Part shown: positions 3,024 to 63,267 of the stretch, piece after piece
Layout: the number at the start of each line of letters is the position of its first letter
Numbering within the stretch: position 1 is the stretch's first letter
Made by a program: the position numbers and the translations under genes
The notes under the pieces: generated by a model
Database searches by the model: none
Told to the model about the DNA's origin: nothing
Seen by the model: the letters and a program-made list of their open reading frames with translations, nothing else
Assembly (NCBI GenBank): GCA_002269645.1
Contig: NIVC01002379.1
Location: 115,441 to 179,440, forward strand
Source: Macrostomum lignano
Taxonomy: Eukaryota
Direction: 5' to 3'
Length of the DNA stretch: 64,000 bases

Positions 3024-3139
<116 letters not shown>

Positions 3140-9179: not shown

Positions 9180-9619
9180 TACTGAAGGCGGTTGCGTACT
9201 GAAGGCAGTGGCGTATTGAAGACAGTGGCTTTCTGAAGACAGTGGCGTATTGAAGACAGTGGCGTATTGAAGACAGCGGCTTTCTGAAGACAGTGGCGTA
9301 TTGAAGACAGTGGCTTACTGAAGACAGTGGCTTACTGAAGACAGTGGCTTTCTGAAGACAGTGGCTTTCTGAAGACAGTGTGGCGTATTGAAGACAGTGG
9401 CTTTCTGAAGACAGTGGCTTTCTGAAGACAGTGGCTTTCTGAAGACAGTGTGGCGTATTGAAGACAGTGGCTTTCTGAAGACAGTGGCTTACTGAAGACA
9501 GTGGCTTTCTGAAGACAGTGTGGCGTATTGAAGACAGTGGCTTTCTGAAGACAGTGGCTTACTGAAGACGGTGGCTTTCTGAAGACGGTGGCTTTCTGAA
9601 GACAGTGGCGTATTGAAGA
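9180..9619. repeat. Minisatellite, 17-19-bp unit (CTGAAGACAGTGGCTTT / TATTGAAGACAGTGGCG)
   Basis: About 25 tandem variant units. Confidence 0.95.
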
Positions 9620-11014: not shown

Positions 11015-13423
11015 ATGAACTGCCAAACTGGACAAACAGTCTGCGGCTTGCTGCTGCTGACGCTCTGCCTGCCGGTGACTCTGAGCGGAGGTAAGCATCT
11101 CCCGGACCACTAGGCTGTAGCTGTATACTTGAGCGTGTACATAGTGACAGCAGCGCGAGCGTGCCAGCGTTGGGCAGTGGTGCAAGAGTGAACGAACGAT
11201 GCCTGGGCGCTTAGACGGAGATGGCACAGGAGTCTCATCCGGAATGCTTCCGTTCTGTACTGTTGCTATTAATGATAACAGAAACTGTCACTTTCTCAGT
11301 ATCAACCTTACTTTGTAAGTGTATATTAAAACTGTCACCAACTGTCAGTCATCGTTCGAGCGTAAGTATTTTTTACACGAAATCTTGGAAAATCTGCCAA
11401 GGTTAAGTTGCTAGCTTTACTTAAGAATTACGTCATTCAGTGCAGTATAACGGCTTGGTCGATGGGTAAATGATGTTTTATGAGAGCACCGTCAGTACAA
11501 GCGTACAACTTTTTTAGCTTCAGCAATCCTCCCTCCCCAAAGTGACTGCTTTTTCGGGAGTGCCGATATGAGGCTTCGCAACTAACCATTGTTCCGTCTT
11601 CATCGTTCCGTTACTACGATGATTGACTGCCGTCGGCTTCAGAAGCAGATATTCTTGATTTTTTATATGTACATTTTGAATTTCTGTCCCAAATCAACAC
11701 CCACGCTATTCCCGCTTCCTGTTGCATTCCTAATAGTTTCAGATTTTTACCTGGGGAAAATTTCCTATTATAAGCGGGGCTTCTAGATAAATTTGACTTT
11801 TTTATATGATGAAGGGCCATACTAATTGATGCTGGGTGACCAGAATAGTGAGACTCCTTATAACAAGCCAAATTAATTTAGAGAAGAGAACTCGAAAAAT
11901 GTAATTGAATTCATCATTGAGCCTGCGTCATCGAATGACCTCAGTTGCTGTTCACCCGGGACACACCCTTCACAGGGAAGTATCATTATTCCCCGGTCAC
12001 CATTAGAGAGATTAAAAGTTGGCTTGGCTTTGAAGTCCGTGCAAGCTCAGTGAAATAGAGCACGGATTACAGAGAGGAGCGGCAGGACATGCTCGCAATA
12101 ACAGGGTACCCTTCCATGCATATTTTGCCTCTCTTGCCTCTGCATAAGTTAAGATGAAGGTAACGATGGCTGACTCTGATTTGAATAGCAAGATGTCTTC
12201 TGACCTACCGGCATTTAATCAGAATATCTGATGAAGAAAGCAGATTATTTGAATTAATAAATTTCGTTCCAACTTGCAGAGTGTACGCTCGTACGCTCGC
12301 ATAGCGCTGATCCGAGCGGATCTTAGGATTAAAATGGCTGCAGATTGGGATCAATAAACCCGGGATTAACCCCCCCCCAAATTGAATTTTATGCCCGAAC
12401 TAAGGAGGAAAAACCGAATCTGATCCAGTCTGATGCGGAATCTGTCAGCTCAGTAATGAAAATAATATATAAATTAGCTCACAATCTTGCTTTCTCTGGC
12501 TGGGAAGACTTACAAAAACAAGTTTTTTTTCAATACTGCTCTGCCAGGTACATTAGACACCGGAGTTATCTTCAGAGACGAATTCTTCTCGTCTCTGAGT
12601 GCATGCAATCCAATGTGCGGAGTTGCACTAAACTCAGAGAGTCTACAATTAAACAAAAACTGATACATGGTTCGGGACTGTTGCCGGACATGTTGCAACA
12701 AGTGCTCGAACGTGAAGATTTGAGGATGTCAAGTAGATTTATCAGATCTATCGGCACTAATAGTTTCCCAAAATTTTGAAACTCACCTCTTTAGCCTTAC
12801 AGCAATTCAACGTAGGTAGCTTGGCCGATGTTCTAACGTCGCTGGTGAAATGGGTACTTTTGTACAATACATCGATTTTTGGCCGACGTTTGGCCCTTGG
12901 TGCTGGCGCCCCTTGGTGCTGGCGCCCCTTGGTGCTGGCGCCCCTTGGTGCTGGCGCCCCTTGGTGCTGGCGCCCCTTGGTGCTGGCGCCCCTTGGTGCT
13001 GGCGCCCCTTGGTGCTGGCGCCCCTTGGTGCTGGCGCCCCTTGGTGCTGGCGCCCCTTGGTGCTGGCGCCCCTTGGTGCTGGCGCCCCTTGGTGCTGGCG
13101 CCCCTTGGTGCTGGCGCCCCTTGGTGCTGGCGCCCCTTGGTGCACAGGGTTGGTTAATTTGTGAATTTTATCGGGTGATTAATTTGAAATTTTCAGAAGC
13201 TTTGGACCCAGAGGAGCCAGTAGGCAGCATTGAACTCGAAGAGCCGTCATTAACCAATTATGACGCCCTTGATGCCGCCGCCAATGCTGGTGGTGATCGG
13301 GCAGGCGCGGCAGGACCTGTGACGCGGCTTCTGGAGGCGCTGCGAGCTGAACAAAACGTCGGGAGTTTCGAACGGCCAGCCAAGCGTTGCAGGATTAACG
13401 GAGCGGCCTGCATGCTGGGCTGA
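11015..13423 (+). CDS. Allatostatin-C/somatostatin-like neuropeptide precursor, 2 exons, 100 aa
   Basis: Exon 1 11015-11090 encodes signal peptide MNCQTGQTVCGLLLLTLCLPVTLSG, with donor GTAAGC in phase 1. Acceptor TTTTCAG at 13196; exon 2 13197-13423 joins in frame: acidic pro-region, KR, then C-terminal CRINGAACML-G-stop (C-x2-N-x3-C plus amidation Gly). Confidence 0.75.
12894..13143. repeat. 16-bp minisatellite (GGTGCTGGCGCCCCTT) x about 15, intronic
   Basis: Near-perfect tandem units; they explain the LVLAPLGAGAPWCWRP ORFs. Confidence 0.97.
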
Positions 13424-17954: not shown

Positions 17955-20901
17955 CTACTCCATCTCAGTCACCTGAATGATCTCCTCGTACTTCGGCGGC
18001 TCCTCGTCGGCAGCGAAGCCCGAGTTGAAGGCTCCCACGGCCACCTCGTCGTAGCTAGGTGGCATGTCCGGCCTGCGGCGCGTCCTGTCCGAGAAAAGAT
18101 CTGGGGGCAGTCGGCCGTCCGACACCGTCATGGCAGACAGCGCTGAGCGATGATGGCTCACGGCTCGGGCGCGAGACCTCGAAGACCACCTCTGGCGCAG
18201 ACAGGTCGAAAGCGCTACGAAAGCCGTCGCAAAGACGAAGAGCCCGATGAGTACACGAACGATGAAAGACCAGTATTTACTCTGTCCGCTGGACCCACCT
18301 TCCGTGCAGTTTGCTTCATCGCTTGAGTCGCTGCAGTCTGTTTGACCGTCGCACACTTTGGCCAATAGGATGCACTCTCGGCCGTTTGAACAGCGCCACT
18401 CTAGAGTTGTGTTGAGTTCGTTAAAACTTGTTTAGCTCGTACTGAAGTCATGGCAAAAATTGAACTAAATCTAGCGAGGAAGCAAACTTTCATGACGCTG
18501 ACTCCTCAGAGCGCACATGTACATGGATACGTGAGCAGGCGCACTCTCACGCAGTGTGTACAGCGGCCCTGACTTTCTAATCATCAGACACTCTTTGTGC
18601 CTTGGGCGTTAGCCCTCATGGGCGAAAATCGCAAAAATCTTTGCGATACATTAATGTGACTGCATCCGGAATCGAACCTGGGTACGTCGTTGGCGCGAGA
18701 GCCAGACGCATTGTCTTGCAATTTGACGATCATTATTCACATTTTTAATGCAGAACAATCCATTACTACAAGCAATGCATTGTCTGTAGGATCATCAAAC
18801 AGAAAAACAATGCAAAGAATCAGCGGTCGCAGCACGTGACAACCATTTGTCTATGGCTCGCGCCTACCGGCGCTCGCCAGACAATCGTTGTCACGCACTG
18901 GGACCGCTGATTATTTATCCATTGCCACTAGGCTACTTTAAACCCCTCTCTTCATTTCTCCCGCTTGTCTTTTGATTTCGTATATGCGAATACGAGCTAA
19001 AAATTCATGCTTTTTATCGAAAGATTTTCATAAAACGTACCGCTACTTCCACACTGAACAGTGCCGTTGACGCCATTGGAACAGTCGCCGTCAGTCACAC
19101 TTAGGTCATCCAAAAGCACCGTGTGAACTTTGTCCCATCGATAAGCTCTGACCACGAGAACCACGCTAGTAAATGAAGATATCGCTTCCGAGCTAACTGA
19201 TCCACTGATCCGATTCCACTGATTGATAGGTCCAGTTGTGGTCAGCACCACCATCGAGTGTCCTGGATAGGTTCCGGATATTTGAACCTCCATTTGGAAG
19301 CTGAACCCGTTGGAGCCCACTCCGTAGAACCACAGTTCGAAGCACCTTTGGCTGCTATACCCAAGACGGCGATTGGACAACAAAACGGCATCCTCGCTTC
19401 CAGGACACAATCGCAGCATCCACTGAGGCAATCGCGGCACACTCCGATCCGGCACTGAGCTTGAAGTGTGGTCCAAGAACGAGCTGATTCCGAATTCACT
19501 GGCTACGCTAAAGTCGGTGACAACTGGCAAGTTAACCGTCTCCCAGCCGCAGGTTGACCACTCAAACGAGCAGATGAACGGCATTCGGCTCTCATAAGCG
19601 GAATTACTGCACTCTGTGGGTTCAGCGCTCAAGTCGTCAAGCCAGTGCGCGCCCCCAGTTGATTTATTCCTGCCCTCATCTGACTGGATGATGTTTACAT
19701 CGATCCAACCGCCAGAGAATCCAGACTCAAGCTGCACTTCAGCCATGCTCCAAGTGGTCAGGCTCCAAAGAGCTGGCAGCCGCAGCAGTACTCGACCACC
19801 ATTCGATTCGGTAAGCGTCAGGGCCTCGTTAGCTGTAGTAAAGCCATTTGATATCCAATAGAATCGGTAGCAGGTTGCAGATTCTGCTTCGGCTGCAGCT
19901 TTGAATCCAGACAATCTCAAAGGCGATCGCGTCCGTTGAGCGAACTCAACAGAATTTCGCTGCACTCTCAGACTGCAGTCGCGTAGGTCAAGCTTCTGGC
20001 TGAAGTGGTTCGAGTGATCCACTTTGCAATCCACCCAGGCATCTTCTCTTTGAATGCTGTGTGCGCCGGTTCGACCAAGAGCAAAATTTGTGCCGAAGTT
20101 GCCAGGTGAATAGCAGCGAGCGTATTCGTAACTTTCGTCGCTTGACATTCCGGCAAAGAAGTCGCTGGAATACGGCCGACTGCAGTCGTTAATGGAGTCG
20201 CAGCGCTTGCTGAAATTAAACCGCGTGCGATTTAAAGTGAGAGCTTTTTAAAAATATTTTTACAGCACACAGTTATTGTTTTAGTGATTTTGTTCTGCAT
20301 GAACTCACCTCGAATTGATTTCGGATCCGTCCAGGCACCGATGTCTCCCGATAAGGCTAGAACTGTTTTGCCCCGGCTTCAAGTTTCTGGAGTCCTCGGT
20401 AGCAAACTCCGCTAGGAACAGAGTCACTCTTTCAAGCTTGGGCTGCAAAACTTCAACGTTGTGTACAGTTAAGAAATACCTGTTGATCGTGTCTGAGATG
20501 TGAAGGCAGATAGATCCGCTGTAGAGACTTTCAGGGCGCAGAAAAACAAACGTGTCGGAGTCGTCTCGCTGCCACAATAGAGAGCCGTTACCCGCGTAGT
20601 TAAGAAACGAGTCGTGCTCACTTTTAAATCCAAATAAAAAGTAAGTATCGTTAGCAGAGTAGAATTCGAACTGTTTGAACTCGATGCACAAGACGTCAGA
20701 TTCGTTTCTAAACTCAATTTCGAATTCGTAGACGCAGTGCGATTGCACAGGTAAGGAGTGGGGAAAGTTTTCACTGACGAATATCCCGCTGCTTTTAGTG
20801 GTAGAGTTTGCATCAATATTGAACACTTCTCTGCAGGCGAGGCAGCAACTCTGAAACAGCGTCAGCATCAATAGCTGATAAATCCTCAATTTAAAAATCA
20901 T
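17955..20901 (-). CDS. Type I receptor A: signal-CUB-LDLa-MAM-MAM-LDLa-TM-PPxY tail, 3 exons, 735 aa
   Basis: Exons 20901-20309, 20209-19041, 18400-17955; GT-AG introns of phase 2 and 1 join in frame. CUB-like GIFVSENFPHSLP..CVYEF; MAM CSFEWSTCGW...LLDDLSV..GDC; LDLa WRCSNGRECI..VCDGQTDCSDSSDEANC; TM; PPSY and PPKY. Confidence 0.88.
18490..18725 (-). mobile_element. Second tRNA-derived SINE-like element, in intron 2 of receptor A
   Basis: Minus-strand B-box CCCAGGTTCGATTCCGG preceded by a tRNA-like head; the tail GCGCTCTGAGGAG...GAAAG resembles L2-type SINE tails. Confidence 0.45.
18818..18912. repeat. Hairpin MITE-like inverted repeat (arms about 34 bp)
   Basis: AATCAGCGGTCGCAGCACGTGACAACCATTTGTCT ... 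AGACAATCGTTGTCACGCACTGGGACCGCTGATT. Confidence 0.7.
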
Positions 20902-21469
20902 GTCTGTCCGTTCCTTCTTTTGATCTTTTCGCGAGAATAGCTATATGAACTTTTTACTGTCTCATAAACACTCTCTAAGCACCTACTGCTATGCTTAAAA
21001 GCATGAGCACAAACGTCACAAAAGGTAGGAAAGCTTGAGCAAAAGACGTTAATTGGCGATAAGATATGTTTGATAAGTACATGTACCTTCACCGCACAGT
21101 GGGCAGCACCGTAGCACTGTCGACACCCGTGTTGATATCAAAATTTTAATCGTCAAATTTATATTTGTTTCTATGATGATATGCTTAAAGACGATTCGAA
21201 AAAGCAAGCATTGCATGGTGCCGTTCTGCACCTGGCTGCGGGACCTTAAGACACATTCTACCATTTTGCTTGAGACGCGCAAAATCTTTCGCGTTGTCAA
21301 AAGACAAAAATGTTGACTTATACGCCATGCATGTAGTGCACTCGTACAAGATGCCTTCTTAGATTTTAACACTGCAAGAGTTCTTGTTTATAGTTCTTAT
21401 TTTCATTTTTGTAAAGCTTGGGGAGTATTAGGATAGGATTGAGCTGGAATCTTTGTGTGTTTTACCAAA

Positions 21470-21527
21470 CTGGATTTTACCATTCAGAACTGGATTTTAC
21501 CATTCAGAACTGGATTTTACCATTCAG
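21470..21527. repeat. 20-bp tandem repeat x3 (ACTGGATTTTACCATTCAGA)
   Basis: Read directly. Confidence 0.9.
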
Positions 21528-21825
21528 CTTTCCGATTGTAATTTTTCTTCATTTTTTATGAAGCTACAAGGCTATTAAATTGAGTAGCAGAGTTGGTGAG
21601 TAAAAAAGGACTGATCGACCGATCATGGATCAGTTATAGTCCAAACATGACCAGTCACTCAATAGACATGGACTGAAAAACCACTCATTGGCCTGTGTTA
21701 AATCAGTCATTGAAGTTGATAGACAAACCATAGACCTGTGTCAAATCAGTAATAGATCTGCAATAAACCAGTAATTAAGCTGTAATAAACCGTTATAGTC
21801 ACTGACCGGCCAGATCAATTTAAGA

Positions 21826-22153
21826 TTAGCCATAGACAAATAATAGCTCATCGTAGACCAGTCCGCACAGAAAGAGAGACACGATGCTGAATTTCGCTAT
21901 TAAGTCGGCTCTCTTAGGCGATATGTTGGCGGCGTCAATATTCTCCGATTCTTCCCCGTTCAGCAGCTGATTTTTCACTGCCTCTGCTTCGTCTCCTACT
22001 GCATCGTCTGGGACTTCGGCGTCGTCTGGCTGTGGTGGAGCAGCTTGTTTTTTCTTGCTCAATAAGCTCTTGTTTGTTTCCTGAAGCCGGTAGGCCATTG
22101 TCTCTGAGAGCCGCGCGCAGTTGGGCTACTGTTAACCGGTCGAGATCAGACAT
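21826..22153 (-). pseudogene. SAP-domain ORF relic with frameshift (retroelement gag-like or SARNP-like)
   Basis: MSDLDRLTVAQLRAALRDNGLPASGNKQELIE is a SAP motif; an acidic continuation lies in another frame. About 30-bp direct repeats at ~21851 and ~22433. Confidence 0.55.
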
Positions 22154-23386
22154 GACGACAGATGAAAAATTTTAGAGCTAAAAAATTGAGCTCACGCAGG
22201 CAGCCAAAAACGCTGAGTAAGCAGAGCGAGACGCAAAGAAAAGGGCAGACGGCGCAGAGGCTAAAGCCCACCTCGCCCGGCCACCACCCCACGCACGCAG
22301 AGCCAAGCACCCCCCATACAGCGCGGACAGAGGGAGAGAGAGAACGCACGCAATGCGACACAAGGCAGGGCAAAGGAGAGGGGTTTAAAACTGGATAGTG
22401 ACTAGTCAAGACCGGTCACAAACCAACGCAGCATCGTAGACCAGAAAGAGAGACACATTGGGAAGACGCGAACACCCATTCCGCCAAATTTTGAAAGCGT
22501 CGGCATAGAAAATGGGCCGGCGACGCACTGGTATATCTTTCGCCAGCGCATTAATTAATTATTGCCAGTGAGTCTTGAATGGGTAAAAGTAGTGAGTAAG
22601 CGCAGGACTAATGCTGACGAGAAGTCCAGCTGTTTCGTTAACCGAGTTGCCAGATTTAGAATACGGCCTTGCAGGTACGGATGTCTGAAGAGGCAGCACG
22701 GCTTTGGAAGATTCAAACAGTCGGAGTGACTTTTCGATACAGTCCGACGGCATTTCGATACAGTCGGAATGAAGGCATCTCGTATCTCTCCGCGTTTCGG
22801 AACTGGCAAGACGTCTTGGAGTACAGCACTGCTAAATTGACTACAGGTAGTGCCGCTTGCCCAAATTGAGCGATTTTGGGTCTTGCTTCAAGTTTTAATA
22901 GGAGTACACAAGCCAGAAAAGTCAGGTTATTACCGAGACAAGTGATTCAAGCCCGACGGAGGATCCAGGGAGCGCCAGGTTTAACCATATCAAGTCCGCT
23001 AGCTCGTCTGAAGTTTCGAAAAATCTTCGATCACTCTCTAAATTTAATTGTCTTTACGAAGATATTTTTGATAAATGACTTTAAAAATCGAAGAGAAATA
23101 AAATTACAATACAATTTCACCTGCAAAAAACTGCTTCGGTCCTCGTCGAGCATCTCAAAAAAGCTCTAGATTGATTTTTTAAACCTATAGCACTTACTCC
23201 GATGTTCGGACCGGAGTACGTGCGACAGAATACGAGGCGTTAAAATTTGACAAGACGTGAATGATTAAAGAATTGAAATAAAAAACTATACAGATTCTGC
23301 TACGAATATATGGAATCAAGAGTAAGCAAGAAAAAGTTATACACGAATTCGTGAAAGGTTTTACGCGTTTTTATCGTTAGGTTCGC

Positions 23387-26017
23387 TTAAACAGTGGAGC
23401 CGCTGCTCTCTTCCTGGTTTTCATTGCCACTTCTCGCCCTGGGTGGTCGCCGAGGTGGCAGCTGAGGCGGCTGGGATTCTTGCTGCTGCTGCTGCTGCTG
23501 CTCCTGCTGCTCTCGCATCTGTATCACCTGAATGATCTCTTCGTACTTCGGTGGCTCCTCGTCGGCAGCAAAGCCCGAGTTGGAGGCTCCTGCGGCCACC
23601 TCTTCGTAGCTAGGCGGCATGTCCGGCCTGCGGCGCGTCCTGTCAGAGCAAAGGCCGGGCGGCAGCCGACCGTCCGACACAGTTACCGGTGGCGCCCGGC
23701 TGTGGTCAGCGAGGCCTCGAGGCCCGCGGCCCCACCAGAGGCGCCTCTTCCGAAAGCAGATGGACAGAGTCAGGAAAGCCACGACGCTAACTGAGATGCC
23801 GAGAACAATGCGAAGGATAAGGGACCAGGCATAATCTCCAGATCTTTCGTAGCAGTTAAGCTCGTCACTGGCATCCGGGCAATGTATTCGACCATCGCAA
23901 CGATATCTCTCCAGAATACACTGCTGCCGATTGGAACATCTCCATTCTGAAGTAGTTTATTCAAAAGACTTAGTCTAATTAGTATGGCACTTCTGCTAGT
24001 ACCGATATACTCGTAATACGAGTATTTTAGAGAACAAGGGAATAATTTTTCTATCTAGTATCCGTATTTCATATATCTTTCAATCTCTAGAAATACTGGA
24101 AATACTCGTAGCTAAACAACAAATTTACCACGCACCATTGGATCCACATTGCACTGATCCGTTGTTTTCGACATTACAGCTGCCCTCAAATACGCTCAAG
24201 TCATCCAGTAGCACCGTAGATAATTCGTATCGATCCTCAGCTAGCATAGTGACACTTATGATTGGTGATTTTGGGAGCATCGTCATAAAAGTGCCACTCA
24301 GACGGTTCCATTGGTTCATTGGCATAGTTGTCGTTAGCAAGACAAATTCATTAGGAAGAATCCCGGATATCCGAGCCTCAACCGTGACGCTGTAGCCGCT
24401 GTATCCGACACCATTGAACCAGATTTCAAAGCACCAAACACGGTCGAATGCCAAGCGACGCTTGGACTCCAGTTGTCCTTTGAAATTGGTTCCCGGACGC
24501 AGACGGAGAACCCGTTGCGGCAGTGGTGGCATCGTCCGGTCTGGCACCGATATCGAGGTGTGGTCCGATATGCTGACTCTCAACTCTTTTGCAACGCTAA
24601 CGTCGGTGACGACTGGCAAGTTGGTGGCCTCCCAGCCGCAGGTTGACCACTCAAAAGAGCAAACGAACGGCATCCGGCTCTCATATGCAGACTTGTCGCA
24701 GGCAGCCGGCTCAGCACTCAAGTCGTCAAACCAGTGCGCTGCCGTAGTCTGATTGCGTTGTTTCGACAGAAAGGCATGAACATAGATCCATTTATTCGTG
24801 AATCCGGGTTCTAGCTGGATTTCAGCCAAGCTCCAAGAGTAAAAACTTTTGCGAGCTGGCAGTCGGAGCAGGACTCGGCCACCATTCGGCTCCGACAGAG
24901 TCAGGGCCTCGTTGTCATCGGTGAAGCCACTAGAGAACCAAAACAACCGGTAGCAGGATGCGGACCGCGTGTTGGCAGCCCATCTAATTCCGTACAGCCA
25001 ATAGTAAAGCGGAAGTGAATTGGTGTTGCCCATCCGAATTTTGAGACTGCAATCGCGGGTGTCAGAGAATGGGAATTGGCGCGAGTGGTCGGTACGACAG
25101 TCACGTTCGGTTCCCCAAGTCGAGAGGCTATGTGCGCTAGCCTGACCTAGGGCAAAGTTGGTGCCAAAACTGCGGTTTGAATTGCAGCGCGCGTGCTCGT
25201 AACTTTCATCGCTTGATTGACCAGCGAAGAAGTCGCTTTGGTACAACTGGCCGTTGTTTCTGCCACAGTCAATTACTGAATTACAGCGGGCGCTGGAAAG
25301 CACATTCATGGAGGATTTTTTCTTGTATTTATGGAGGATAAACAGTATTTCCCCATGTATAATGAACTTTGGTTAATAAAGTGCCTTTTGGTCCTTTTTT
25401 GAAGCTCACCTTTCGTTTAAATAGCTGCCATCCAAGCACCGGTGAAGACCCAAGAAACTTGAATTGTTGTCTATCACTGTCCCCGAGTCCATAGCCTCGT
25501 ACTCAGCGTAGAAGCGAGTCATTCTACCAATACTGTTCTCATAAAATTTCCGATTGACCACAGCCACCAGATGAGTGGACATTTGGTAGTTGCAATGCAT
25601 GCAGAGCGGTCCGTTATGCAGATTTGATGGCCACTTGTGCACAAATTTACTAGCGTTGGCTCTCTCCCATAAGAGCGAGCCGTTCCCAGTGTAGATAAGG
25701 ACCGCGTCGTAATGACTCGAACCTCCGACCAGAATTTGCGTCTCCTTGTCCGAGTTCTCGTTCACAGTGAAGAGTTCCAACTCCTTGAATCGAAAGCACA
25801 GGACATCGGAGGCGAAGCTTAGTTGCACTTTGAATTCGTAGACACAATAGGACTCCGTTGGCAGCGAGTGTGGAAAATTTTCGCTGACGAAAACTCCTCG
25901 ACTGTTAGCGCTTGTTGGACGGCCGTCGACGGTAAGCACTTCTCTGCAAGCGAGACAAAAATTCGCATGTTGAAGAAGCTGCAACACCGACAGCAGAAGC
26001 AGCAATTGTCCTGTCAT
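23387..26017 (-). CDS. Type I receptor B: same CUB-LDLa-MAM-MAM-LDLa-TM-PPxY architecture, 3 exons, 774 aa
   Basis: Exons 26017-25410, 25292-24136, 23946-23387; intron positions and phases are the same as in receptor A. Second LDLa WRCSNRQQCILERYRCDGRIHCPDASDELNC; poly-Q tail. Confidence 0.88.
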
Positions 26018-28483
26018 TTGAGAAGAGTTTTTTGCTTCTATATGTCTGAATCTACTCTTGGATAAAAATTCGAGGTGTATATAGGTAAATCAAAGTATTG
26101 GGTCGATGCACTGAGCGTAAGTGGCTGGCTTTGTTTGCTAGCTATACACTTATTTCTTTGCTTTTCAGTATTTCCACCAGCGAATAAACTCTAGCATAAA
26201 CAGTTTTTTCAATGCGATAAGATATTGTGCACTTGCTGGGCCAGTAGAGGGGAGTTAGATACCGAACCTGCTCACTGCCTTTCAGCTCGCAGCAGTCTGA
26301 GTTGCCATGGCGATAGGCTTGTGCAGTGCAGGACTCGAGATTACTCGAGGTTGAGAATTGGAAGCCTGCGAGATATCGCTTTTCGCAGGCCTTATTAACT
26401 ATAGCAAATTGCCTGACACATCCGCAACCTGAGTAGTTCTCTAGAGGATGTTGGCGGTAAAATATTTTGGATTAAACTATATGCATTTTGAAAGAACTAT
26501 GAGCATATCCTGAGTCTCAAATAACTCCAAAAAAAGCAATCAAGTGGCCAGAATGAAAGGCTAAAGGTGTCCCCAAGTAACGTCTAAGCCTGTCTTTTTC
26601 TCTTTATGGAACCCAATGATTAAAATTTTGCAGGGCCTTTATAGGCTTTATCTCTTAGCTTTGTTTTGGTTGAAAAAAACAAAATAGACCCGATTTAGTT
26701 GGATTCGCTGCAATACGGATGCTATAGAGATAAAATATAAAGTTTTAAGATGAAAGTGTAAGCATCATTACATGTAAATTATACTGCAAAGACTCGGTGA
26801 GTTTTATGCATCTGTTTATTCTTAGAACGCGTAGCGAACTCCGGTCGGAGGGGCTGTTACACCTCGAGTTGTTATAATTCTACACATTGGCTGGTGAATT
26901 TTATTATTCCATCTGATAAATTCTGTTTATCCAGAAATTTAAAGAAAGCTACGAGGTAGGTTTTAAACTTTGTTCTCTTGATGCCTCTGGATTAAGCTGA
27001 AAATATGTAAATATTTTTAATCTTTTTCTATTTCGTATGAGCGTAGCTCATGTCCTGGATGGTGTCACACATTATAGCGACCGTTACTAGCAGGTAGCAC
27101 GTACCTGCATCGGACTCACTCCTATAACCGGCTTTAGCAATTTCATCTGAACACAATTGAAGTAGCAATATACTTCATTTTTATTCGTAGCTCTAGTGCA
27201 ATCTACGCGTTTTGTTTAGTTCATAGGCACTGCAGGTTCACTTTACATAGAGCGCGCGCTCTGAGCAATTGCCGGGCATAACTGGTCTATTATACTCGGA
27301 TGCTTTACTAACAATAGTTGCGCACTCAGCTAAGAGTATCAGAGCCAACTGTACAGCCCCCATCGGGGTGCAGGCCGGCAATTGTAGTTAGACAAAGCGC
27401 GCTGTTATTGTAAGAGCCTGCCATATGGCTTCATAGGGGCTAATTGGCATCGTACGCACTGGCGTGGCGCACTTATGATTTTCTAATTGGGCGAGAATTA
27501 GCATAATTATAAACGGATAGAACGGTAGACGAAGCCTCTATCTTTTTATCCGTATTGCATTGGTTGCTTCTGCATAGTGGTGGGGGGTAGACTGGACCAC
27601 AATCTCCTAGCTATTGAATACACAGTTTGTAATTGTACATATAATGACATGAGTAGTCATACACCAGCCTGCAGCCCTGCTGTGCACACTTGTCTGCTAC
27701 GGTCCCCTAAAAGCGCCGCTCCAGAGAGTGCACCCGATCGGATGCTATATATATAAGATAAGCGTAGAAGCTCTTCGGCAAAAGAAAAAAAGAAAAAAAT
27801 GGAAAATTCTCTATGCTCGTAAAGCGCAACGATTTTGTCAGTACGAGCCGTAATAGTAAGTAAATTTTTCTGAACCCTAGATACTTCGGCCTACCGATTG
27901 CGCATGCAATGAGTGGCCGACATTAGCCATCTAACCGAATACAGTTCCGGTTTTATAATGCACATGATGCATAAGAGCTGCTTGTAGTTTAATGTCGCCA
28001 CTCATTGCATGCCTATGCGAGCCTGAAGCAACTTCATTTCAGCCTACCATTGTCCCTATTTCGCATGAGGCAACCTTTTTTTCTGTCTTTGGAATCATGC
28101 GATGTATAACAACGTGAAAAAAATGCATGCAAGTTTTTAAATAGGTCAGAAACAGCATTCAAGGCTAGCTAGTAAGCTCGTCAGACGCTAGGTAATGCGT
28201 CTGACTCGCACATTAATTTGGGGCTCGGGCAGGGGATTTTGCAATTCTCGCCCAAGAGCCCTTTAAGTCTCAGAGGTTTGTTCGTGCCTGACGATAAGAA
28301 AATTAGAGGGCCTCCGTACTCTGCGTGCCTGCCGTGTACAGAGTGCCTAGAGTGTGTGTCGGAGTACATGCGTGTCAGCTGTGGTCAGCGGAGTGTACAC
28401 GACTGCTTGCTCCCTCCCTCGCTGCCTGCTGGGTCAACTGTCGTTCTTTATCTACTGGAAAAATAACTAACTACATGTAGCCA

Positions 28484-28809
28484 CAGGGGCGTCGCCACCG
28501 GGAAGGGGGACAGGGGGGAGGCATGCCCCACCCAGTGAAAGCTAAAGCCCCACCCCACCTTGTGACCCGTTGGGGAAATCCGTAGTTTTGCTTTAGGGCG
28601 CCAAAATATAACGCCTTTGGCGCCAAAATGAGTGCCTGTGGCGCCAAAATGAGTGCCTTTGGCGCCAAAATGAGTGCCTTTGGCGCCAAAATGAGTGCCT
28701 TTGGCGCCAAAATGAGTGCTGGCAACACCGATTCTCAAAAAATGTACATGTGGGAATTTAGTCATGTACTGAGTACATGTAAGACGTAGATTTCATGGGG
28801 ACGCCCCTG
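28484..28809 (+). mobile_element. hAT-type MITE (TIR CAGGGGCGTC) containing a 21-bp internal repeat x5
   Basis: TIRs CAGGGGCGTC/GACGCCCCTG; 8-bp flanks TGTAGCCA/CGTAGCCG (6/8 match). Internal unit TGGCGCCAAAATGAGTGCCTT. Confidence 0.8.
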
Positions 28810-29455
28810 CGTAGCCGCCAACTGAGTCAGACTAGCCAAGAGCTTGAGTTAGAATATAGCCAAGCGCTCAGGTACTCGAACTCTGTTTCAAACTCATGTC
28901 ACACTAATATGTTATATGTTATTTATTTCTTAGGACTAGTTGTGATTACTTATCGTAGATTGCCTATACTTACGAGTATAGTGGAACCCAATAAGTTGAT
29001 TTACAGTCTTATGATGCCGAGTTAAATATTCCCATTGATTACACTCTAGCAAGGACTATTCAAACATCCTTGAGGTTACTGAGTTAGTAACGCTTGGTCA
29101 TTCGCAAAGCAACAAAACACTGAGTAAGTAACAATAGGCTAACTATTAAGAAACGCACTTTTGATTCGTTGGATACATTCGTGCACCAGGTAAATAATTT
29201 TAGATAATCTCATTCATTACTGAAAAGTACTTCGTATGATGTTTAGTGTACAACGGCTACGTCCAAACAAATCAAGACGTGGGAAATTCTTCAAGTTTCT
29301 GTTAGTCGACATATCTAACTGTTATAGCCCGCCATCTAAATAGAATTTGAATTTCTCTTCTAGTTAGGCATCGCATTTCACAGTTGCGGAGTTGCAGATT
29401 TGACAGTTCGATAGCGGAGAAACCCGCGTCCAGTCAGTTGACGACTTCACAAAAG

Positions 29456-31923
29456 CTAATGTTGGGGGTGAAGTTCTTCGTACTTTGGCAGCCCCTCAGT
29501 TGCCTCCTCGTAGCTTGGTGGCGCCTCTGGTAACTCATCCAGGCCTGTCGATTGTGCTGCAAAATTACCTGCCGTTTGATGGCTGCTACGAGCAGACCTG
29601 AGCCGACTGTACTGGCAAGCCCCCAGAAGCAGAAGCAGAATCACTACAACGCTGAGCGGCAGGATGGCTGTCCAGTTTGGCGCCGCGGCTACGAAGCAAT
29701 GAGCTTCGTCGCTTTGATCACCGCAATCAAAGTGACCGTCGCATATCTGGTTGACTTGAACGCACTGCTTCCTGTCAGAACAGAGCCATTCTGAAAGAAG
29801 TACGAGGTACGAAGTATATATGATCTGTCAGAATTGGCAGGGATCTGAAGTCACGCTTAGGTTTCTAGTAGCCAGAAGATTTTGACTTTGGGATTTAATC
29901 AGATTTTGATTCCATATTTGGAGCATGAGCAGCCAGCGAATAAATAGTATAAGTTTGCACAAACCTAGTATCCCACACTCTACTGTGCCATTAACTTCGT
30001 ATTGGCGAAAGCATGAATCATCAACAATGCTCATATCGTCTAAAAACACGGCACGGGTTGTATTGCTTGACTTCACTCTGAATCTGATTGCTACGTTTGG
30101 ATGCCTCGACTGTCTTCCAGCTTCGACGCCAAAGGTGCCGGACAGGAGACGCCACTGATTGTTCGGCACGTGAGGGTCAGAAATGTCCAGCTCTCTATGC
30201 CGGACAGCAAGTCGATAATGACGTCAATTTTAAAACTGTAGTCTCCGTCACCTAATCCGTACACCCAGATATCGAAGCACCATGAGCTGCCAAATGACAA
30301 GCTGCGCTCGTACCAAATGCTTGCCATCCAGCTAGTCTCTGGGGTCATGTGAAGCATCCGCTGAGGCAGCCGGGGAACCCTCCGGCCTAGCACCGAGCTC
30401 GAAGTGTGGTCCGACATATTGACTCCGAACTCCTTTTCAACGCTCGCGTCAGTGACAACTGTCAAGTAATTCGTTTTCCAGCCGCATGTTGACCACTCAA
30501 ATGAGCATATGGACAACATGCGTTTCCCATATGCTGAGTCGTTACAGGCTGCGGGCTCGGCACTCAGGTCATCCAACCAATATGTGCCAATCGTTCGATT
30601 CTGCTGCTCCGATTGAATCGCAAGCGCATCGATAGAGCTGCCTGTGAATCCAGGCTCAATCTGCACCTCAGCGATGCTCCAGGTATAGAATCTCCATCGA
30701 GCCGGCAATCGGAGCAGAGCTTTCCCACCGTTCGGCTCTGCCAGCGTCAGTGCCTCATCGTCTTTGTTGAATCCACTGGAAAACCAGAAGAATCTGTAGC
30801 AGGTTGCAGATCCCGGATTGCCTGCCGCCAGCAGACCAGACAGGCGAAGTTCCGGTATGAACGCTTTCGCTGATTTGGGTTGCAGCATAAGACTACAGTC
30901 GCGAGAATCAGATAAGCTGCTAAATAGACGCGAATGATCCATTGTGCAGTCCAACTGAATGTCAGCAAGACTGTGTGCACTGGCCTGGCCTCGTGCAAAA
31001 TTGGTTCCGAAGCTACGGGTTGAGTTGCAGCGTGCATGCTCGTAGCTTTCATCGCTTGATAAGCCCTCAAAGAAGTCGCTGCTGTTAAAATAATTTTCAC
31101 AATCGTTGACTGTATTGCAGCGATCGCTGAAACGGAACAAATTTCGAAAATAAATTATAGTTTCAATTGAAATGTTGTCAAGTTTGTGACTGGGTAGAAA
31201 TACTGGATTGGTTAGTTGTTGAGGTAAAATCTAAATTACCTAACCCTTTGGATGCTCCAAAGTTAATGTAGAATTTGATTTACCTTTTATCAACGTATGT
31301 GCCATCCAGGCATCGATGCTGCGTCTCAGTACTTTTGATCAAGCCGGGGTTAGTCTGCCAGTTCGGATCATTAATATTAATCGCCTCATATAAAGCAAGG
31401 AAGCGTGTTAACCTGCTGTTTGAATTATGAATGAATTTGTAGTTGATTACAGTTACATAGTATCGCCAGTAGAATTCGCTTATTTTGATTTTTAAACACA
31501 GCGAGCCGTTGCGCAGATTTTCCGGCCGAGCAATAACAAGACCATCGGGTTCGTCAGCCTCTCGCAGAAGCGAGCCATTCCCGGCATAGGCAAGCAGAGG
31601 ATGGGCCAGTAGTGTTCCATAGCGCACCTCCAAAACTGACTCCTGATCGGAAATCTCATCAGCTGTGAAGAGCTTCATCTCCTGGAACTGGAAGCACATG
31701 GCGTTAGATTCGTCACTTCCCGAGTAGTAAACACGAAACTCATAGATGCATATTGAATGCAGCGGCAGAGGGTGGGGAAAGTTGTCGCTGACGAATGCGC
31801 CTCGGCTATCAGGACTTCGCCGGTTGCCGTCAACCATGATCTGCTCCCTGCGACGAAACAGTTTGAAGGCCGATGCAGCATGAGGAGCAGAAAAAGAAAC
31901 TTTAAATAAATAGGCTGTTTCAT
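29456..31923 (-). pseudogene. Receptor C (third paralog) with two apparent 1-bp deletions
   Basis: Exons 31923-31284, 31126-29965, 29790-29456 with homologous splice sites. Frameshifts at ~31851 (signal peptide MKQPIYLKFLFLLLML.. vs REQIMVDG) and ~30170 (FLTLT vs VPNNQWRLLSG). Could be assembly indel errors. Confidence 0.75.
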
Positions 31924-32385: not shown

Positions 32386-32684
32386 CAGGGGCGTCGCCAT
32401 GGATTTTATGGTGGGTGGGGGACAAGGCCAAGAATTCAACATGTAGATGACTAAATTCCTATATTTCCATTATTGTGAGAATCGTGTTGTCAGCGCTCAT
32501 TTTAGCGCCGCAAGCACTTATTTTAGCACCGAACGCGCTATATTTTGGCGCCCTGAAGAAAAATTATTTATTACCACAACGAGTCACAAGGTGGGGTGGG
32601 GGACAAAGCATTGGCATGTCCCCCTCATAGCTTTTACTGGGGGGGGGACATGTCTCCCCTGTCCCCCCGGTGGCGACGAGCCTG
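32386..32684 (-). mobile_element. hAT-type MITE, same family as 28484-28809, opposite orientation
   Basis: TIRs CAGGGGCGTCGCCA/TGGCGACGAGCCTG; perfect 8-bp TSD CGTGAATC (32378-85 and 32685-92). The reverse complement aligns with the first copy. Confidence 0.88.
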
Positions 32685-33160: not shown

Positions 33161-34338
33161 TTAATGCGCCGGAGAGTCAGTTACCAGACCGGAGTCCTTG
33201 CTCCGGTGTTCACCTGAGGTCAAGGACACAATTAAAATGATCAGCAGCAGTAGTGCAACAACTCCCACGAATACGACGGCCGGTCGGTGATTTCGCCACA
33301 GCCGCATCATTGGAGAGGCCGGCTGCTCGTCCACCGCTACGCTGAACTGTCTTCGGCCCCGAACACTGGAGTCGTCTTGGATCAGCAGCTCCACATCGTC
33401 GTCTTCGTCGTCCTGCTGCAGAAGAGATTCAACGAGGCGCTCAGTTGATGCACTCATCCCCGAGTCTGGTTGCTGCTGTTGTTGATGCCGATTCTGACGA
33501 CCATCTGGTGACTCTGAAGCTGCCGAAGCCTCAGACGATTTTTTTACCTCATCGTCGATAGTCGTTAGAAGATGGCGCATTCTACGGATGTACTCGCCTC
33601 GGGCTGTGGTTTCCTCCGCTGGCTGACGGTTTTGCTCAGACATCCGTCGAAGGGTCTCGGCCAGGTCGTCCAGATCCCAGCCAATGCTTTTCACCGACTT
33701 TCCAATTTCTTCTGTAAAAGCAGAAAGGCATCGACTAACAACACTCCGAGCGTATTATATATTAAAAAATAGACAGCTTTTAGCGTTAACTTCGCTTTAT
33801 CCACTTTTTAGTAGATATAATAAATAGATCGTTTCGTCATCACTATGCCTGTAGGTATGTTATGCTGATTATTTTATTTGCGCATTTTATAATTTACTAT
33901 ACCGACGATATTTAACTCTGCGACTGATAACCTCACCTATGCATGCATGTATACATACATGTACGTGACTGGGTGGTAACTAAAGCACTGAATTAGAACT
34001 AATTGACATCTCAAATGTCAAGTCTAGTTAGTCCTTTAGCTCCTATATCATGCATGATTCAATTTACACTAGGATTATGATCAATTGGACTTTCAAAAAA
34101 CACATTTAACTGTACATGTTACATGCAAACTGGATGCACGAATTGAAAAAAGACCTAAATGCGAGATCTTACCGCGCAGCCAGTTGAATTCATCCTCGGC
34201 TTCTTGAAGCTCCTCCTGCGAGGTAAGTTCACCAGCGTCAATCTTCACGCGGCGCCATCTTTCGAGGCTCTCTTGAAGTAGCTTTAGCTTGTTGTCTAGA
34301 GCCTGCTGGTCGAGCTGAAAAGGATCTAAAGAAGGCAT
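33161..34338 (-). CDS. Syntaxin-6/10-like protein (Syntaxin-6_N domain + TM) lacking the SNARE motif, 2 exons, 238 aa
   Basis: Exons 34338-34173 and 33711-33161, phase-1 GT-AG intron. MPSLDPFQ...WLREEIGKSVKSIGWDLDDLAETL aligns with STX6 EDPF...NNLRSIEWDLEDLDETI; hydrophobic segment near the C-terminus. Confidence 0.8.
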
Positions 34339-42510: not shown

Positions 42511-45154
42511 ATGTCTAATTGCTCAATCATGCTATCTGGCATTCTAGCCCATGTGGCTGATTTTGACAGACTTTACATCAATCTTGATAAGGAGGCAAAT
42601 GATTTAGCTCAAGTGCAGCAGCTGGTTGAGGCTTGCTCTAAGCCAGCTGTGCCAGTTCCTGGAGAGGTAAGCTGTCTTGTCTACATAATGCCAACACATT
42701 GATATTTTAATGTTTTTAGATTATTGATTAATGTTACACTGAGACTGGCATTTTCAGACTATCTTCTGAGAATGGGAATGACAGCATACAACTGGGAAAT
42801 GTTGTGCAATCCTTGCAATTCTGTCCCAATTGTGTGCAATCCATGCAGTTCTGTCCCAATTGTGTGCAATCCATGCAATTGTCCCAATTGTGTGCAATCC
42901 ATGCAGTTCTGTCCCAATTGTGTGCAATCCTTGCAATTCTGTCCCAATTGTGTGCAATCCATGCAGTTCTGTCCCAATTGTGTGCAATCCATGCAATTGT
43001 CCCAATTGTGTGCAATCCATGCAGTTCTGTCCCAATTGTGTGCAATCCATGCAATTCTGTCCCAATTGTGTGCAATCCTTGCAATTCTGTCCCAATTGTG
43101 TGCAATCCATGCAGTTCTGTCCCAATTGTGTGCAATCCATGCAATTGTCCCAATTGTGTGCAATCCATGCAATTCTGTCCCAATTGTGTGCAATCCATGC
43201 AGTTCTGTCCCAATTGTGTGCAATCCATGCAGTTCTGTCCCAATTGTGTGCAATGTGTGCAGTTCTGTCCCAATTGTGTGCAATCCATGCAGTTCTGTCC
43301 CAATTGTGTGCAATCCATGCAATTCTGTCCCAATTGTGTGCAATGTGTGCAGTTCTGTCCCAATTGTGTGCAATCCATGCAATTCTGTCCCAATTGTGTG
43401 CAATCCATGCAATTCTGTCCCAATTGTGTGCAATCCATGCAATTCTGTCCCAATTGTGTGCAATCCATGCAATTCTGTCCCAATTGTGTGCAATCCATGC
43501 AATTGTCCCAATTGTGTGCAATACATGCAATTCTGTCCCAATTTTTATTCTGATATCTATTCTGACGCTTAAGCTGACAGCTCCGTGTTAGTTATGATTT
43601 ACCTGGCCTTCTCTAGCTTCCCTATTGAAAGCTTAAGCAGTAAAAATTGTGTGCTTTCCACCCCAGCTGTTCGCCGCATGCTACGAAGGCAGTCTCTACC
43701 GAGGCATGTGCATCAGGGCCGGTCGGGAAGACTCACTTATTCATTTCTTAGACTATGGCAACACCGAACGGGTGCCGCTGAATCAAATGTTTGAACTGCC
43801 AGCCGGGCTGCTACAAACGAGTCCGCCGCTAGTTCGGTGCTGCAGCCTGGAAGGCCTGCTTGCCATTGACGAGGAGGCGGCCCTGGCTGAAATCACCCGC
43901 TTGGCGCTGGAGCGGCCAGTCACGCTGCGCTTGTCCGACGGTACAGACTGCGGCCAGGCTGCCATCGTTGTCGAGGATCTGCTTGATGAGGCTGGTCAAT
44001 CAGTTAGCGAGCGTCTTATCGAGCTGCGTCTTGTCCGTCGCTATAAACCGGTACGGTACGGCAATAAGCAAGCCGCCGGAACCGCGCCTGTTGTTGCTAT
44101 GCGACCGATAACAAATATCAATGCTGCTCTGTGCGATGAAAATTCGAACCTGCCTATTAATGAGTTGTCGCTTGCCAAGCAGACTGCTAGTGCCTTGAAG
44201 TTTTGCGAGTCTAACGACTTGTTAAAACCGCCTAGCAACGAGACTAAATGGCCTAGCAACGAAATCAAGCCGCTTATCAACGAGGCTAAATCGCCTAGCA
44301 ACGAGGCTAAGTCGCCTAGCAACAATGTTAAACTGCCTAGCAACGATGCTAAACCCCCTAGCAACGAGGCTAAACCGCCTAACAACGAGGCTAAACCGCC
44401 TAGCAACGAAATCAAACCGCCTGGCGACGAGATCAAACCGCCTGGCGACGAGATCAAACCGCCTGGCGACGAGATCAAACCGCCTGGCGACAAACTACAC
44501 TGTATCTATAGTGGCCCGCTAAAGCTAACGCATATAGTCTCGCCAAGCGAATTCTATTGCATACTTCCTGGTGCGCCTCCATCGCCGCCAGCTCCGCCGC
44601 TCACGTACAAGAAGCCGGCGCACCTCGTCAGTCTGGCCGACCAGAACGAAATCGATGTGAACAGCGTGTACCTCGGCCAGTATTCGCACGATCCAACGCG
44701 CCGCTATCACCGAATGCGCCTACTCAGATTGAACCTTAGCAACAACACGGCAACCGTTCTCTTAGTCGATTTTGGCTACGTTGAAACTTGCAAATCTTTG
44801 TCAGAAATCTATGTCGTACCACCGACTGACGCCGAGCTGGCGGCTTTTATGACCGCCCCGACGCGGGCCTCGCTGTGCCGCCTGCGCGGCCTGGCCGTCG
44901 GCGCCCTGCCCGGCTTGACCAGCAAGGCCGTTTGCCTGATGCGTCGTCTGGCGGACCCGAGCTGGGCCGATCTGAAAGAGTCCGGCGGGGCCGCCGCCAC
45001 CACCTCAGCCGTGTCGGCCTACGCGGACGTGTACAGCTCGGAAAGCGGCGGCCTGCCCTGCTACCCGGTTGACCTTCACGTGTCCGGCTCCGGTAATAGC
45101 GGCTGCCTCATGGCCAGTCAGCTGATCTCGGCTGGCTTGGCCATGCGGGAATAA
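42511..45154 (+). CDS. Tudor-domain-containing protein (TDRD-like) with two extended Tudor domains; may be 5'-incomplete
   Basis: Exon 42500-42666 (ILAHVADFDRLYINL...PVPGE, donor GTAAGC) joins in phase 0 to exon 43667-45154 (LFAACYEGSLYRGMC...IHFLDYGNTE). Second domain THIVSPSEFYC...VLLVDFGY...ASLCRL. Confidence 0.85.
42803..43542. repeat. 30-bp minisatellite (TGTGCAATCCATGCAATTCTGTCCCAATTG) x about 25 with 27-bp variants, in the Tudor intron
   Basis: Read directly; explains six overlapping repeat ORFs. Confidence 0.97.
44226..44492 (+). repeat. Coding 21-bp repeat (KPPSNEA/KPPGDEI) x about 12 in the inter-Tudor linker
   Basis: 7-aa periodic peptide in ORF 43649-45154. Confidence 0.9.
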
Positions 45155-53969: not shown

Positions 53970-54074
53970 ATTCTTTAAAAGATACGTAAGTTAATGTGTC
54001 TATTGCCAAGTTTTCATAGATGATTCCCATTTTTTATTTCATGTTCTTCACGAATTCTATTGTTAAAATTTAGA

Positions 54075-63068: not shown

Positions 63069-63093
63069 CTGTCTGTCTGTCTGTGTGTCTGTG

Positions 63094-63180
<87 letters not shown>

Positions 63181-63199
63181 GTCTGTCTGTCTGTCTGTC

Positions 63200-63266
<67 letters not shown>

Positions 63267-63267
63267 G
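63069..63267. repeat. (CTGT)n microsatellite
   Basis: Read directly. Confidence 0.97.

Follow-up and report, generated by a model that had tools for sequence, protein, structure and literature searches.

Three tandem genes for putative CUB/LDLa/MAM receptors with paired PY motifs in Macrostomum lignano, and a nemertean protein of the same layout

What kind of protein is encoded by three similar, neighbouring genes in the genome of Macrostomum lignano, and what might their short cytosolic tails do? The genes, here called A, B and C, lie in a stretch of 64,000 nucleotides (assembly GCA_002269645.1, contig NIVC01002379.1, positions 115,441 to 179,440 of the forward strand), which was analysed as a whole and is referred to as the window. 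We read them as genes for type I receptors built from CUB, LDLa and MAM domains, whose tails would recruit WW-domain ubiquitin ligases of the Nedd4 family through two PY motifs, a mechanism that we infer from the motifs; we put the probability of this reading at roughly 0.6. The kind of protein is not surprising in itself, because the mixing of CUB, LDLa and MAM domains and the presence of PY tails are both common in animals.

A comparison of the spliced protein A with the window (tblastn) gave exactly three matching loci, all on the minus strand, and the exonic direct repeats in the window are spaced at about 5.1 and 5.85 kb. The exon junctions of A, B and C were taken directly from the window sequence and then translated, resulting in the following gene models:

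17955-20901, minus strand: gene A; exons 20901-20309, 20209-19041 and 18400-17955; 735 amino acids, intact, a type I membrane protein
23387-26017, minus strand: gene B; exons 26017-25410, 25292-24136 and 23946-23387; 774 amino acids, intact, with a Q-rich C-terminal extension
29456-31923, minus strand: gene C; exons 31923-31284, 31126-29965 and 29790-29456; 712 amino acids only after two single-nucleotide corrections

All introns are of the GT...AG type and interrupt homologous codon positions in the protein alignment. In each of the three genes, intron 1 is in phase 2 and cuts a Ser codon (after the AG of AGC) within the first LDLa domain (LDLa1), and intron 2 is in phase 1 and cuts a Glu codon (after the G of GAA or GAG) ahead of the Trp that opens the second (LDLa2). 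The splice junctions agree with independent public models, those of A with P0001 and those of B with P0003 (NCBI BOX15_Mlig012733g1, to which gene B is nearly identical). Protein A is 100% identical to UniProt A0A1I8GD79 (P0002) across the region modelled there, and the remaining three database matches are also from M. lignano. The A0A1I8GD79 model of gene A lacks residues ~455-587, which make up most of the second MAM domain (MAM2; exon 2, 19041-20209), and this gap is probably a mis-predicted internal intron.

A first-pass annotation of this DNA had described three same-strand paralogs with a shared three-exon structure and shared intron phases, and both the tblastn comparison and the GT/AG junctions at homologous positions bear this out; its account is exact for A and B, whereas gene C fits only after repair of the frame. 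All three proteins, which we take to be membrane glycoproteins, start with a hydrophobic signal peptide and carry 8-9 NxS/T sites and 22-25 cysteines in the ectodomain. The first-pass annotation had also proposed one transmembrane (TM) segment per protein. The hydropathy scan of A, B and C agrees, revealing in each a single strongly hydrophobic segment of 21 residues, followed by an Arg-rich stretch that fits the positive-inside rule, as in a type I single-pass protein:

18204-18266, minus strand: TM segment of A (amino acids 633-653), by hydropathy scan
23759-23821, minus strand: TM segment of B, by hydropathy scan
29615-29677, minus strand: TM segment of C, by hydropathy scan

The ectodomains were assigned by Pfam searches with the complete proteins and with segments cut out of them, with gathering cut-offs of 24.1 bits for LDLa, 26.4 for MAM and 21.4 for CUB, and by profile comparisons. 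From the N-terminus to the membrane, the predicted domains are:

20350-20832, minus strand: probable CUB domain of A, divergent (amino acids ~24-185); in B at ~25450-25945, in C at ~31325-31849
20113-20343, minus strand: LDLa1 of A, degenerate (amino acids 187-230), split by intron 1
19609-20112, minus strand: MAM1 of A, degenerate (amino acids ~231-398)
19081-19572, minus strand: MAM2 of A (amino acids 411-574)
18306-18400, minus strand: LDLa2 of A, canonical (amino acids 588-619), at the start of exon 3

LDLa2 exceeds its cut-off in all three proteins (Ldl_recept_a, 48, 36.6 and 28.4 bits in A, B and C, respectively). It has six cysteines and the DxSDE calcium cage (C..C..C..CDG..DC.D.SDE..C), and its matches in the Protein Data Bank (PDB) are LRP2, enteropeptidase and VLDLR. 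MAM2 (PF00629) lies above the cut-off in A (29.9 bits) and below it in B (20.9 bits) and C (12.7 bits); an independent MAM profile, which we built from 200 MAM domains of 20 unrelated representative proteins, recognised it in all three (41, 24 and 29 bits).

The same 200-domain profile matched MAM1 with a probability of 84.5% (E 7e-6, hhalign), the C-terminal half of MAM1 being in register with it (C-YRFFWF..., W..AEVQ, W-L-DDLS...C). As controls, MAM2 reached 98.3% and the CUB region, used as the negative control, 0.5%. MAM1 is also collinear with the MAM1 that Pfam calls in the protein XP_074643565.1 of the nemertean Tubulanus polymorphus, which is described below. When MAM1 was compared internally with MAM2 by means of the shallow profiles of the family, the match was confined to the terminal DDLS..C strand (probability 0.7%, hhalign), and a search of PDB sequences with the MAM1 profile gave no relevant match.

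LDLa domains have the disulfide connectivity C1-C3, C2-C5 and C4-C6. In LDLa1 (PF00057; a partial match of 18.2 bits, under the cut-off of 24.1) there are four cysteines instead of six: C2, C4, C5 and C6 are kept, and C1 and C3 are absent. An insert of ~9-13 residues precedes its acidic SDE motif, and it aligns to the canonical LDLa1 of Tubulanus, with 'SDESYE.A.C' in common. For the CUB region, 10 of the 11 matches of its profile among PDB sequences were CUB-containing proteins (cubilin, the best, with E 0.0018, the CUB2 region of enteropeptidase, and MASP-3), with the canonical G-x-F-x-S-P-N-F-P...C-x-Y motif as the basis of the alignment. The CUB region of the family matched the Tubulanus CUB alone with a probability of 88% (E 3e-6, hhalign). 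These matches suggest that amino acids ~24-185 of A are a probable, divergent CUB domain.

The Tubulanus protein came from an exhaustive HMMER profile search of 1.84 billion representatives, which yielded 3710 matches, almost all of them via LDLa; the best 150 of the 3710 were screened for MAM, LDLa, a TM segment and a PY tail. The screen picked XP_074643565.1 (P0057), annotated as 'uncharacterized protein LOC141900531', which is the only CUB-region match among the 148 non-Macrostomum proteins listed in this search. Since the screen covered the best 150 of 3710 matches, further orthologues may have been missed. In the nemertean protein Pfam calls a CUB domain (51 bits, amino acids 36-148), two MAM domains (135 bits) and three LDLa domains (84 bits), arranged as CUB-LDLa-MAM-MAM-LDLa-LDLa-TM and followed by a tail with PPPY and PPSYDDA. 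The family profile is collinear with it from CUB to TM over 561 columns (99.1%, E 7.5e-19, hhalign). This collinear homology to a protein in which Pfam calls the domains outright rescues the weak CUB, LDLa1 and MAM1 calls of the trio, and the order CUB-LDLa-MAM-MAM-LDLa given by the first-pass annotation is correct on this ground, with CUB, LDLa1 and MAM1 being divergent or degenerate.

Compared with Tubulanus, cysteines were lost in disulfide pairs in Macrostomum: C1 and C3 of LDLa1, those of 'C...fCG' in CUB (which reads 'A...YAG') and those of 'C.FE...C' in MAM1 (where 'FGCTFENDYC' corresponds to 'FGTNFALGQA'). This paired loss argues for a coherent degeneration rather than a misalignment, and it is the reason why the Macrostomum domains are hard to detect. 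The nemertean protein shares with the trio the order CUB-LDLa-MAM-MAM-LDLa-TM, the paired PY tail and the 'SDESYE.A.C' end of LDLa1. It differs in that all of its domains are canonical with their disulfide cysteines, and in having one extra LDLa before the TM segment. Its tail is long (336 amino acids), of low complexity and lysine-poor, and its gene has about 12 exons instead of three, with no tandem paralog within +/-10 kb. Only two of the 336 residues of the Tubulanus tail (amino acids 682-1017) are Lys, against a share of 5.5% in the ectodomain (binomial p about 1e-6). For Macrostomum we dismissed lysine depletion of the tail as a clue to an adaptor role, since Lys is scarce throughout these proteins (2.2-2.8%, p about 0.5) and the depletion is significant in Tubulanus only. 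We likewise make no claim of an intron position shared with Tubulanus, as the intron ahead of the final LDLa agrees in phase but is offset by 6 codons. Being itself uncharacterised, the nemertean protein lends no function to the trio.

A word-indexed search with the N-terminal profile of 383 amino acids (E <= 10) found M. lignano only, and a search with the Tubulanus protein found only partial matches of the MALRD1/AEGP type. On sequence grounds, the trio and XP_074643565.1 form an unnamed family, with membership defined by collinearity from CUB to TM and by at least two [PL]PxY motifs in the tail. As the nemertean has the same layout, the architecture is older than the flatworms and not specific to them. 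The first reading of the locus had not recognised this domain order as a named family, and no named family of this order came up in the searches either: among the matches listed, the full-length relatives are only automatically annotated or uncharacterised entries.

How does this layout compare with named proteins? The MAM-LDLa repeat unit of MALRD1 and MAMDC4 (AEGP, endotubin) resembles MAM2 plus LDLa2 of the trio. Matches of this type from Mercenaria, Diadema, Aplysia, Petromyzon and Latimeria are among the best 150 of 3710, with P0069, P0071 and P0084 covering the family-profile positions from about 414 to 634, and proteins of this type are the best named matches of the Tubulanus homolog. 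However, they are far larger, with 4 to >30 alternating MAM/LDLa repeats and without an N-terminal CUB, whereas the two MAM domains of the trio are adjacent, without LDLa between them; a paired PY tail was not detected in the MALRD1/MAMDC4-type examples screened. LRP3, LRP10, LRP12 and NETO1/2 resemble the trio as type I proteins with CUB and LDLa ahead of one TM segment, and the NETO2 chain 7f56_E matches the trio across LDLa2 and TM (E 1.4e-4). They differ in having no MAM and two CUB domains with a different spacing, and homology was not detected beyond generic modules. The heavy chain of enteropeptidase (LDLa-CUB-MAM-CUB-LDLa) combines the same three module types in one chain, and no other class of solved proteins matches the CUB-like region (E 0.07-0.2) as well as LDLa2 (E 4e-10). 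Unlike the trio, this serine protease is a type II membrane protein, contains SEA, SRCR and protease domains, arranges its modules in another order and lacks a PY tail. The domain order, the MAM-MAM adjacency and the PY tail of the trio are absent from MALRD1/MAMDC4, LRP3/10/12, NETO and enteropeptidase.

The age of the three genes was assessed from their synonymous sites, which are saturated between A, B and C (proportion of synonymous differences, pS, about 0.7; synonymous divergence, dS, above 2). In this coarse pairwise comparison, the ratio of non-synonymous to synonymous divergence (dN/dS) of the paralogs is 0.14-0.33 in every segment. A second copy of the locus, L001, lies on contig NIVC01001210.1 of GCA_002269645.1 with the same gene order as in the window (syntaxin-6-like gene, C', B', A') and an identity of 99.1-99.5% over C and B and about 95.6% over A. 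Between A and A' (97.5-97.9% exon identity) dS is 0.055 and dN/dS 0.25; between B and B' dN/dS is 0.23. Purifying selection on every segment implies functional genes, and the duplications that gave rise to A, B and C are old. The family had earlier been called lineage-expanded, which overstates what are three old, saturated paralog types plus near-identical homeologous or allelic copies. A role in arms-race recognition, in immunity or between gametes, is not favoured either, given pairwise dN/dS values of 0.14-0.33 in every ectodomain segment.

The following features of the tails carry the functional part of our reading:

18051-18062, minus strand: PY motif 1 of A, PPSY (amino acids 701-704); in B at 23606-23617, PPSY; in C at 29510-29521, PPSY
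17988-17999, minus strand: PY motif 2 of A, PPKY (amino acids 722-725); in B at 23543-23554, PPKY; in C at 29480-29491, LPKY
17961-18128, minus strand: tail tract of A that pairs with 23516-23683 of B; 159-168 nt, 88-89% nucleotide identity

The tails follow the consensus PPSY[DE]E[VA] and [PL]PKYEE[IL]. PPSY plus P(P)KY had been noted in each tail; A and B have PPSY and PPKY, and C has PPSY and LPKY. Both tail tyrosines of A and of B sit in PPxY, and conservation between the tail of C and those of A and B is limited to the two PY motifs and the acidic +1/+2 residues that go with them. By shuffling of the tail residues, the probability of at least two [PL]PxY motifs is 5e-5 for A, 5.5e-4 for B, 7.5e-4 for C and 2.8e-3 for Tubulanus. 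The tract shared by A and B runs from VSDGRLPP through both PY motifs, and most of its synonymous sites are identical, whereas elsewhere A and B are saturated; it probably reflects gene conversion that keeps the PY tail uniform.

PPxY and LPxY are described in PMC8509885 as recognised ligands of Nedd4-family WW domains. The best functional analogy is LDLRAD3, for which PMC11150648 describes LDLa modules, one TM segment and two conserved PPxY motifs, and gives Itch and Nedd4 as reported partners (citing Noyes et al. 2016). Like the trio, LDLRAD3 is a type I single-pass protein with a membrane-adjacent LDLa and two conserved PPxY motifs in its tail; in contrast to the trio, its ectodomain consists of three LDLa only, without CUB and without MAM, and the likeness in sequence is only that of the generic LDLa module (PDB 7ffn, E 2e-5 over LDLa2). 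The small PY-motif membrane adaptors of Nedd4 or Rsp5, Ndfip1/2, CYYR1 and yeast Rcr1, likewise carry paired PY motifs behind a TM segment but are without a large ectodomain. Sub-threshold Pfam echoes of RCR in protein B (E 0.015) and of CYYR1 in the TM segment and tail of Tubulanus (E 1.8e-5) probably reflect composition and motifs, not descent. The combination of LDLa and PY is an old one, as sponge LDLR-like proteins with PY tails (P0055, P0109) indicate.

In the proposed mechanism, the ectodomain would bind an extracellular ligand or partner, and the two PY motifs would dock the WW domains of HECT ubiquitin ligases of the Nedd4 family. The receptor and its cargo could then be ubiquitinated, endocytosed and sorted to lysosomes; alternatively, the protein could act as a membrane adaptor or activator of the ligase, as described for LDLRAD3 and Ndfip. 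From the motifs we reasonably infer that the proteins may be regulated by ubiquitin via WW-domain ligases. A wider view, which we hold only tentatively and at less than even odds, is that the trio and the Tubulanus protein may represent a spiralian-conserved family in which a ligand-capture ectodomain is hard-wired to Nedd4-family ligases and which was triplicated in Macrostomum. Such a family would correspond to LDLRAD3 or Ndfip but with a large ectodomain, and could serve as a ligand-gated adaptor of the ligase; the Macrostomum ectodomains would have shed several disulfide pairs, and gene conversion would have held the PY tail constant.

Several observations weigh against reading the trio as ligase-recruiting CUB/LDLa/MAM receptors. 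The CUB match (PF00431) stays below the cut-off of 21.4 bits in A and B (20.2 and 20.5 bits, E about 7e-4), and there is none in C. MAM1 (PF00629) is without a Pfam match in A and B and reaches 15.5 bits in C, with a cut-off of 26.4; compared with the single Tubulanus MAM1 sequence, it is not significant alone (hhalign). AlphaFold2 gave a mean predicted local distance difference test score (pLDDT) of 36.8 for full-length A with a five-sequence alignment and of 38.3 for amino acids 19-401 of A, with values of 30-67 over the CUB region; with only about three effective sequences, these models are unusable. A Foldseek search of PDB with the model of amino acids 19-401 gave no match at E <= 0.001, and its top matches, the MASP-2 CUB and enteropeptidase (E 0.03), come from a low-pLDDT model, are not significant and were not used. 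The folds of CUB and MAM1 are therefore backed by sequence-profile evidence only. The gene identifier Mlig012733 was not found in the literature full texts and supplements searched, including for expression data. The window sequence of gene C cannot be translated without repair. Finally, the tail tyrosines also fit YxxPhi sorting signals (YDEV, YEEI), and YEEI is a classic ligand of Src-family SH2 domains once phosphorylated.

The frame of gene C is not open in the window: the signal peptide and the CUB domain, as well as the start and the end of MAM2, lie in different frames. Compared with L001, two single bases are missing:

31851-31852, minus strand: frameshift site 1 of gene C, one G missing (GTCGGCAGG becomes GTCGCAGG), in the signal-peptide/'CLAC' region
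30169-30171, minus strand: frameshift site 2 of gene C, one C missing (CTCACCGTG becomes CTCACGTG), inside MAM2

Site 1 parts the frame of the signal peptide from that of the CUB domain. C' in L001, a 99.8%-identical copy of C, carries both bases and has an annotated product of 712 amino acids; UniProt A0A1I8GS94 (P0004) also reads through both sites. Apart from the two single-base deletions in the window, C and its L001 counterpart are separated by 5 substitutions over 2.6 kb. Across 12.3 kb, 56 substitutions and 14 indels separate the window from L001; nine of the indels are 1-nt, most of them within homopolymers of 5-7 bases. The break is either due to two assembly indels or to a very recent haplotype-specific inactivation.

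In the latter case, gene C would be a true pseudogene in the haplotype or homeolog of the window, and only A and B would be functional here. This is possible, and we rate it as somewhat less probable than an intact gene. The two frameshifting single-base deletions (GG to G, CC to C) are both outside long homopolymers, whereas most of the other 1-nt indels between the window and L001 occur where a base is repeated 5-7 times. Of the four coding substitutions that separate C from C', three are non-synonymous and one is synonymous, compared with 4:5 for B/B' and 23:26 for A/A', although these counts are too small for a test. However, with only 5 substitutions in 2.6 kb separating C from C', two frameshifts within such a short time are unlikely unless they are errors. 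In addition, the frame is intact in two independent sources, the L001 annotation and A0A1I8GS94, and long-read assemblies of the M. lignano genome differ by ~1 indel per kb.

The surroundings of gene C hold further features. Directly upstream lies a syntaxin-6-like gene (33161-33694, minus strand, and upstream), which A0A1I8GS94 fuses to gene C by splicing into the signal peptide; the annotation of GCA_002269645.1 keeps both genes separate, and A0A1I8GS94 is likely a chimeric gene model. A 109-nt inverted repeat, 83% complementary, flanks gene C (28548-28656 and 32493-32601) and is probably a dispersed repeat element, since open reading frames (ORFs) across both arms encode similar peptides. 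At its left arm there is a 21-nt tandem repeat (28597-28719), where the window is 63 nt longer than L001. Between B' and A', L001 contains ~3.5 kb (13076-16569 of L001) that are absent from the window, with no ORF >= 120 amino acids there.

With regard to the tails, an alternative to ligase recruitment is that the tyrosines serve mainly as YxxPhi signals for adaptor proteins or as phosphotyrosine docking sites, YEEI being the optimal Src-family SH2 motif, and not as WW ligands. The proteins would then be constitutively endocytosed, or they would be receptors coupled to tyrosine kinases. Indeed, of PPSYDEV, PPSYEEV, PPSYEEA, PPKYEEI and LPKYEEL, all but PPSYEEA satisfy Y-x-x-hydrophobic, the acidic +1/+2 positions are conserved, and a third tyrosine motif of the Tubulanus tail, IPSYEDA, has a similar acidic context without PP. 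Yet every copy, and the nemertean homolog as well, keeps the prolines at -3/-2, which neither YxxPhi nor SH2 binding requires, and PPSYEEA of C and PPSYDDA of Tubulanus end in Ala, a poor Phi residue. We therefore consider this unlikely as the main role of the tyrosines; the two functions need not exclude each other, and in beta-dystroglycan phosphorylation is known to switch PPxY motifs.

In receptor phosphatases and meprins, MAM domains serve in homophilic adhesion or oligomerisation, and PPxY is a generic class I WW ligand, both of which would suit adhesion or signalling receptors whose PY motifs bind non-ligase WW proteins (Yorkie/YAP, Kibra, MAGI, WWOX) in Hippo-type or scaffold pathways. 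This we regard as improbable, given that the documented partners of single-pass proteins with LDLa and paired PY motifs, such as LDLRAD3 as described in PMC11150648, are Nedd4-family ligases, and that the short tails of A, B and C showed no other signalling motif or domain.

Elsewhere in the window, an intact ORF of 360 amino acids at 50873-51955 (minus strand) encodes a Mos1/mariner-type transposase (Pfam Transposase_1, HTH_48). A 30-nt satellite with 25 copies (42803-43543, plus strand) is located directly upstream of a Tudor-domain ORF of 501 amino acids (43649-45154, plus strand), which itself contains a 21-nt coding repeat (44225-44485). An Fcf2 ORF (pre-rRNA processing; 54060-54782, plus strand) is followed by a 33-nt satellite with 28.8 copies (54858-55810), and a low-complexity ORF of 1095 amino acids, rich in Q, P, A and S, extends over 58485-61772 (plus strand). 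At the window edge, the ORF pieces 609-1211 and 1360-2094 (minus strand) match successive parts of a galactose-3-O-sulfotransferase profile, as a two-exon gene. Tandem repeats at 12894-13143, 9180-9619, 3026-3137 and 63069-63267 include a 16-nt array (15.6 copies, 100% match) and long CT and CTGT microsatellites. No tRNA genes were found in the 64-kb window.

A, B and C are already present in public databases as automatic annotations, and the trio provides a worked example of how degenerate CUB, LDLa and MAM domains, missed by standard domain libraries, were revealed only by a homolog from another phylum. If the reading of the trio as ligase-recruiting receptors is true, these genes would offer a simple and genetically tractable case of a modular ectodomain coupled to the recruitment of HECT ligases, in an organism that offers RNA interference and transgenesis and with natural paralogs that vary in the ectodomain but share a constant tail.

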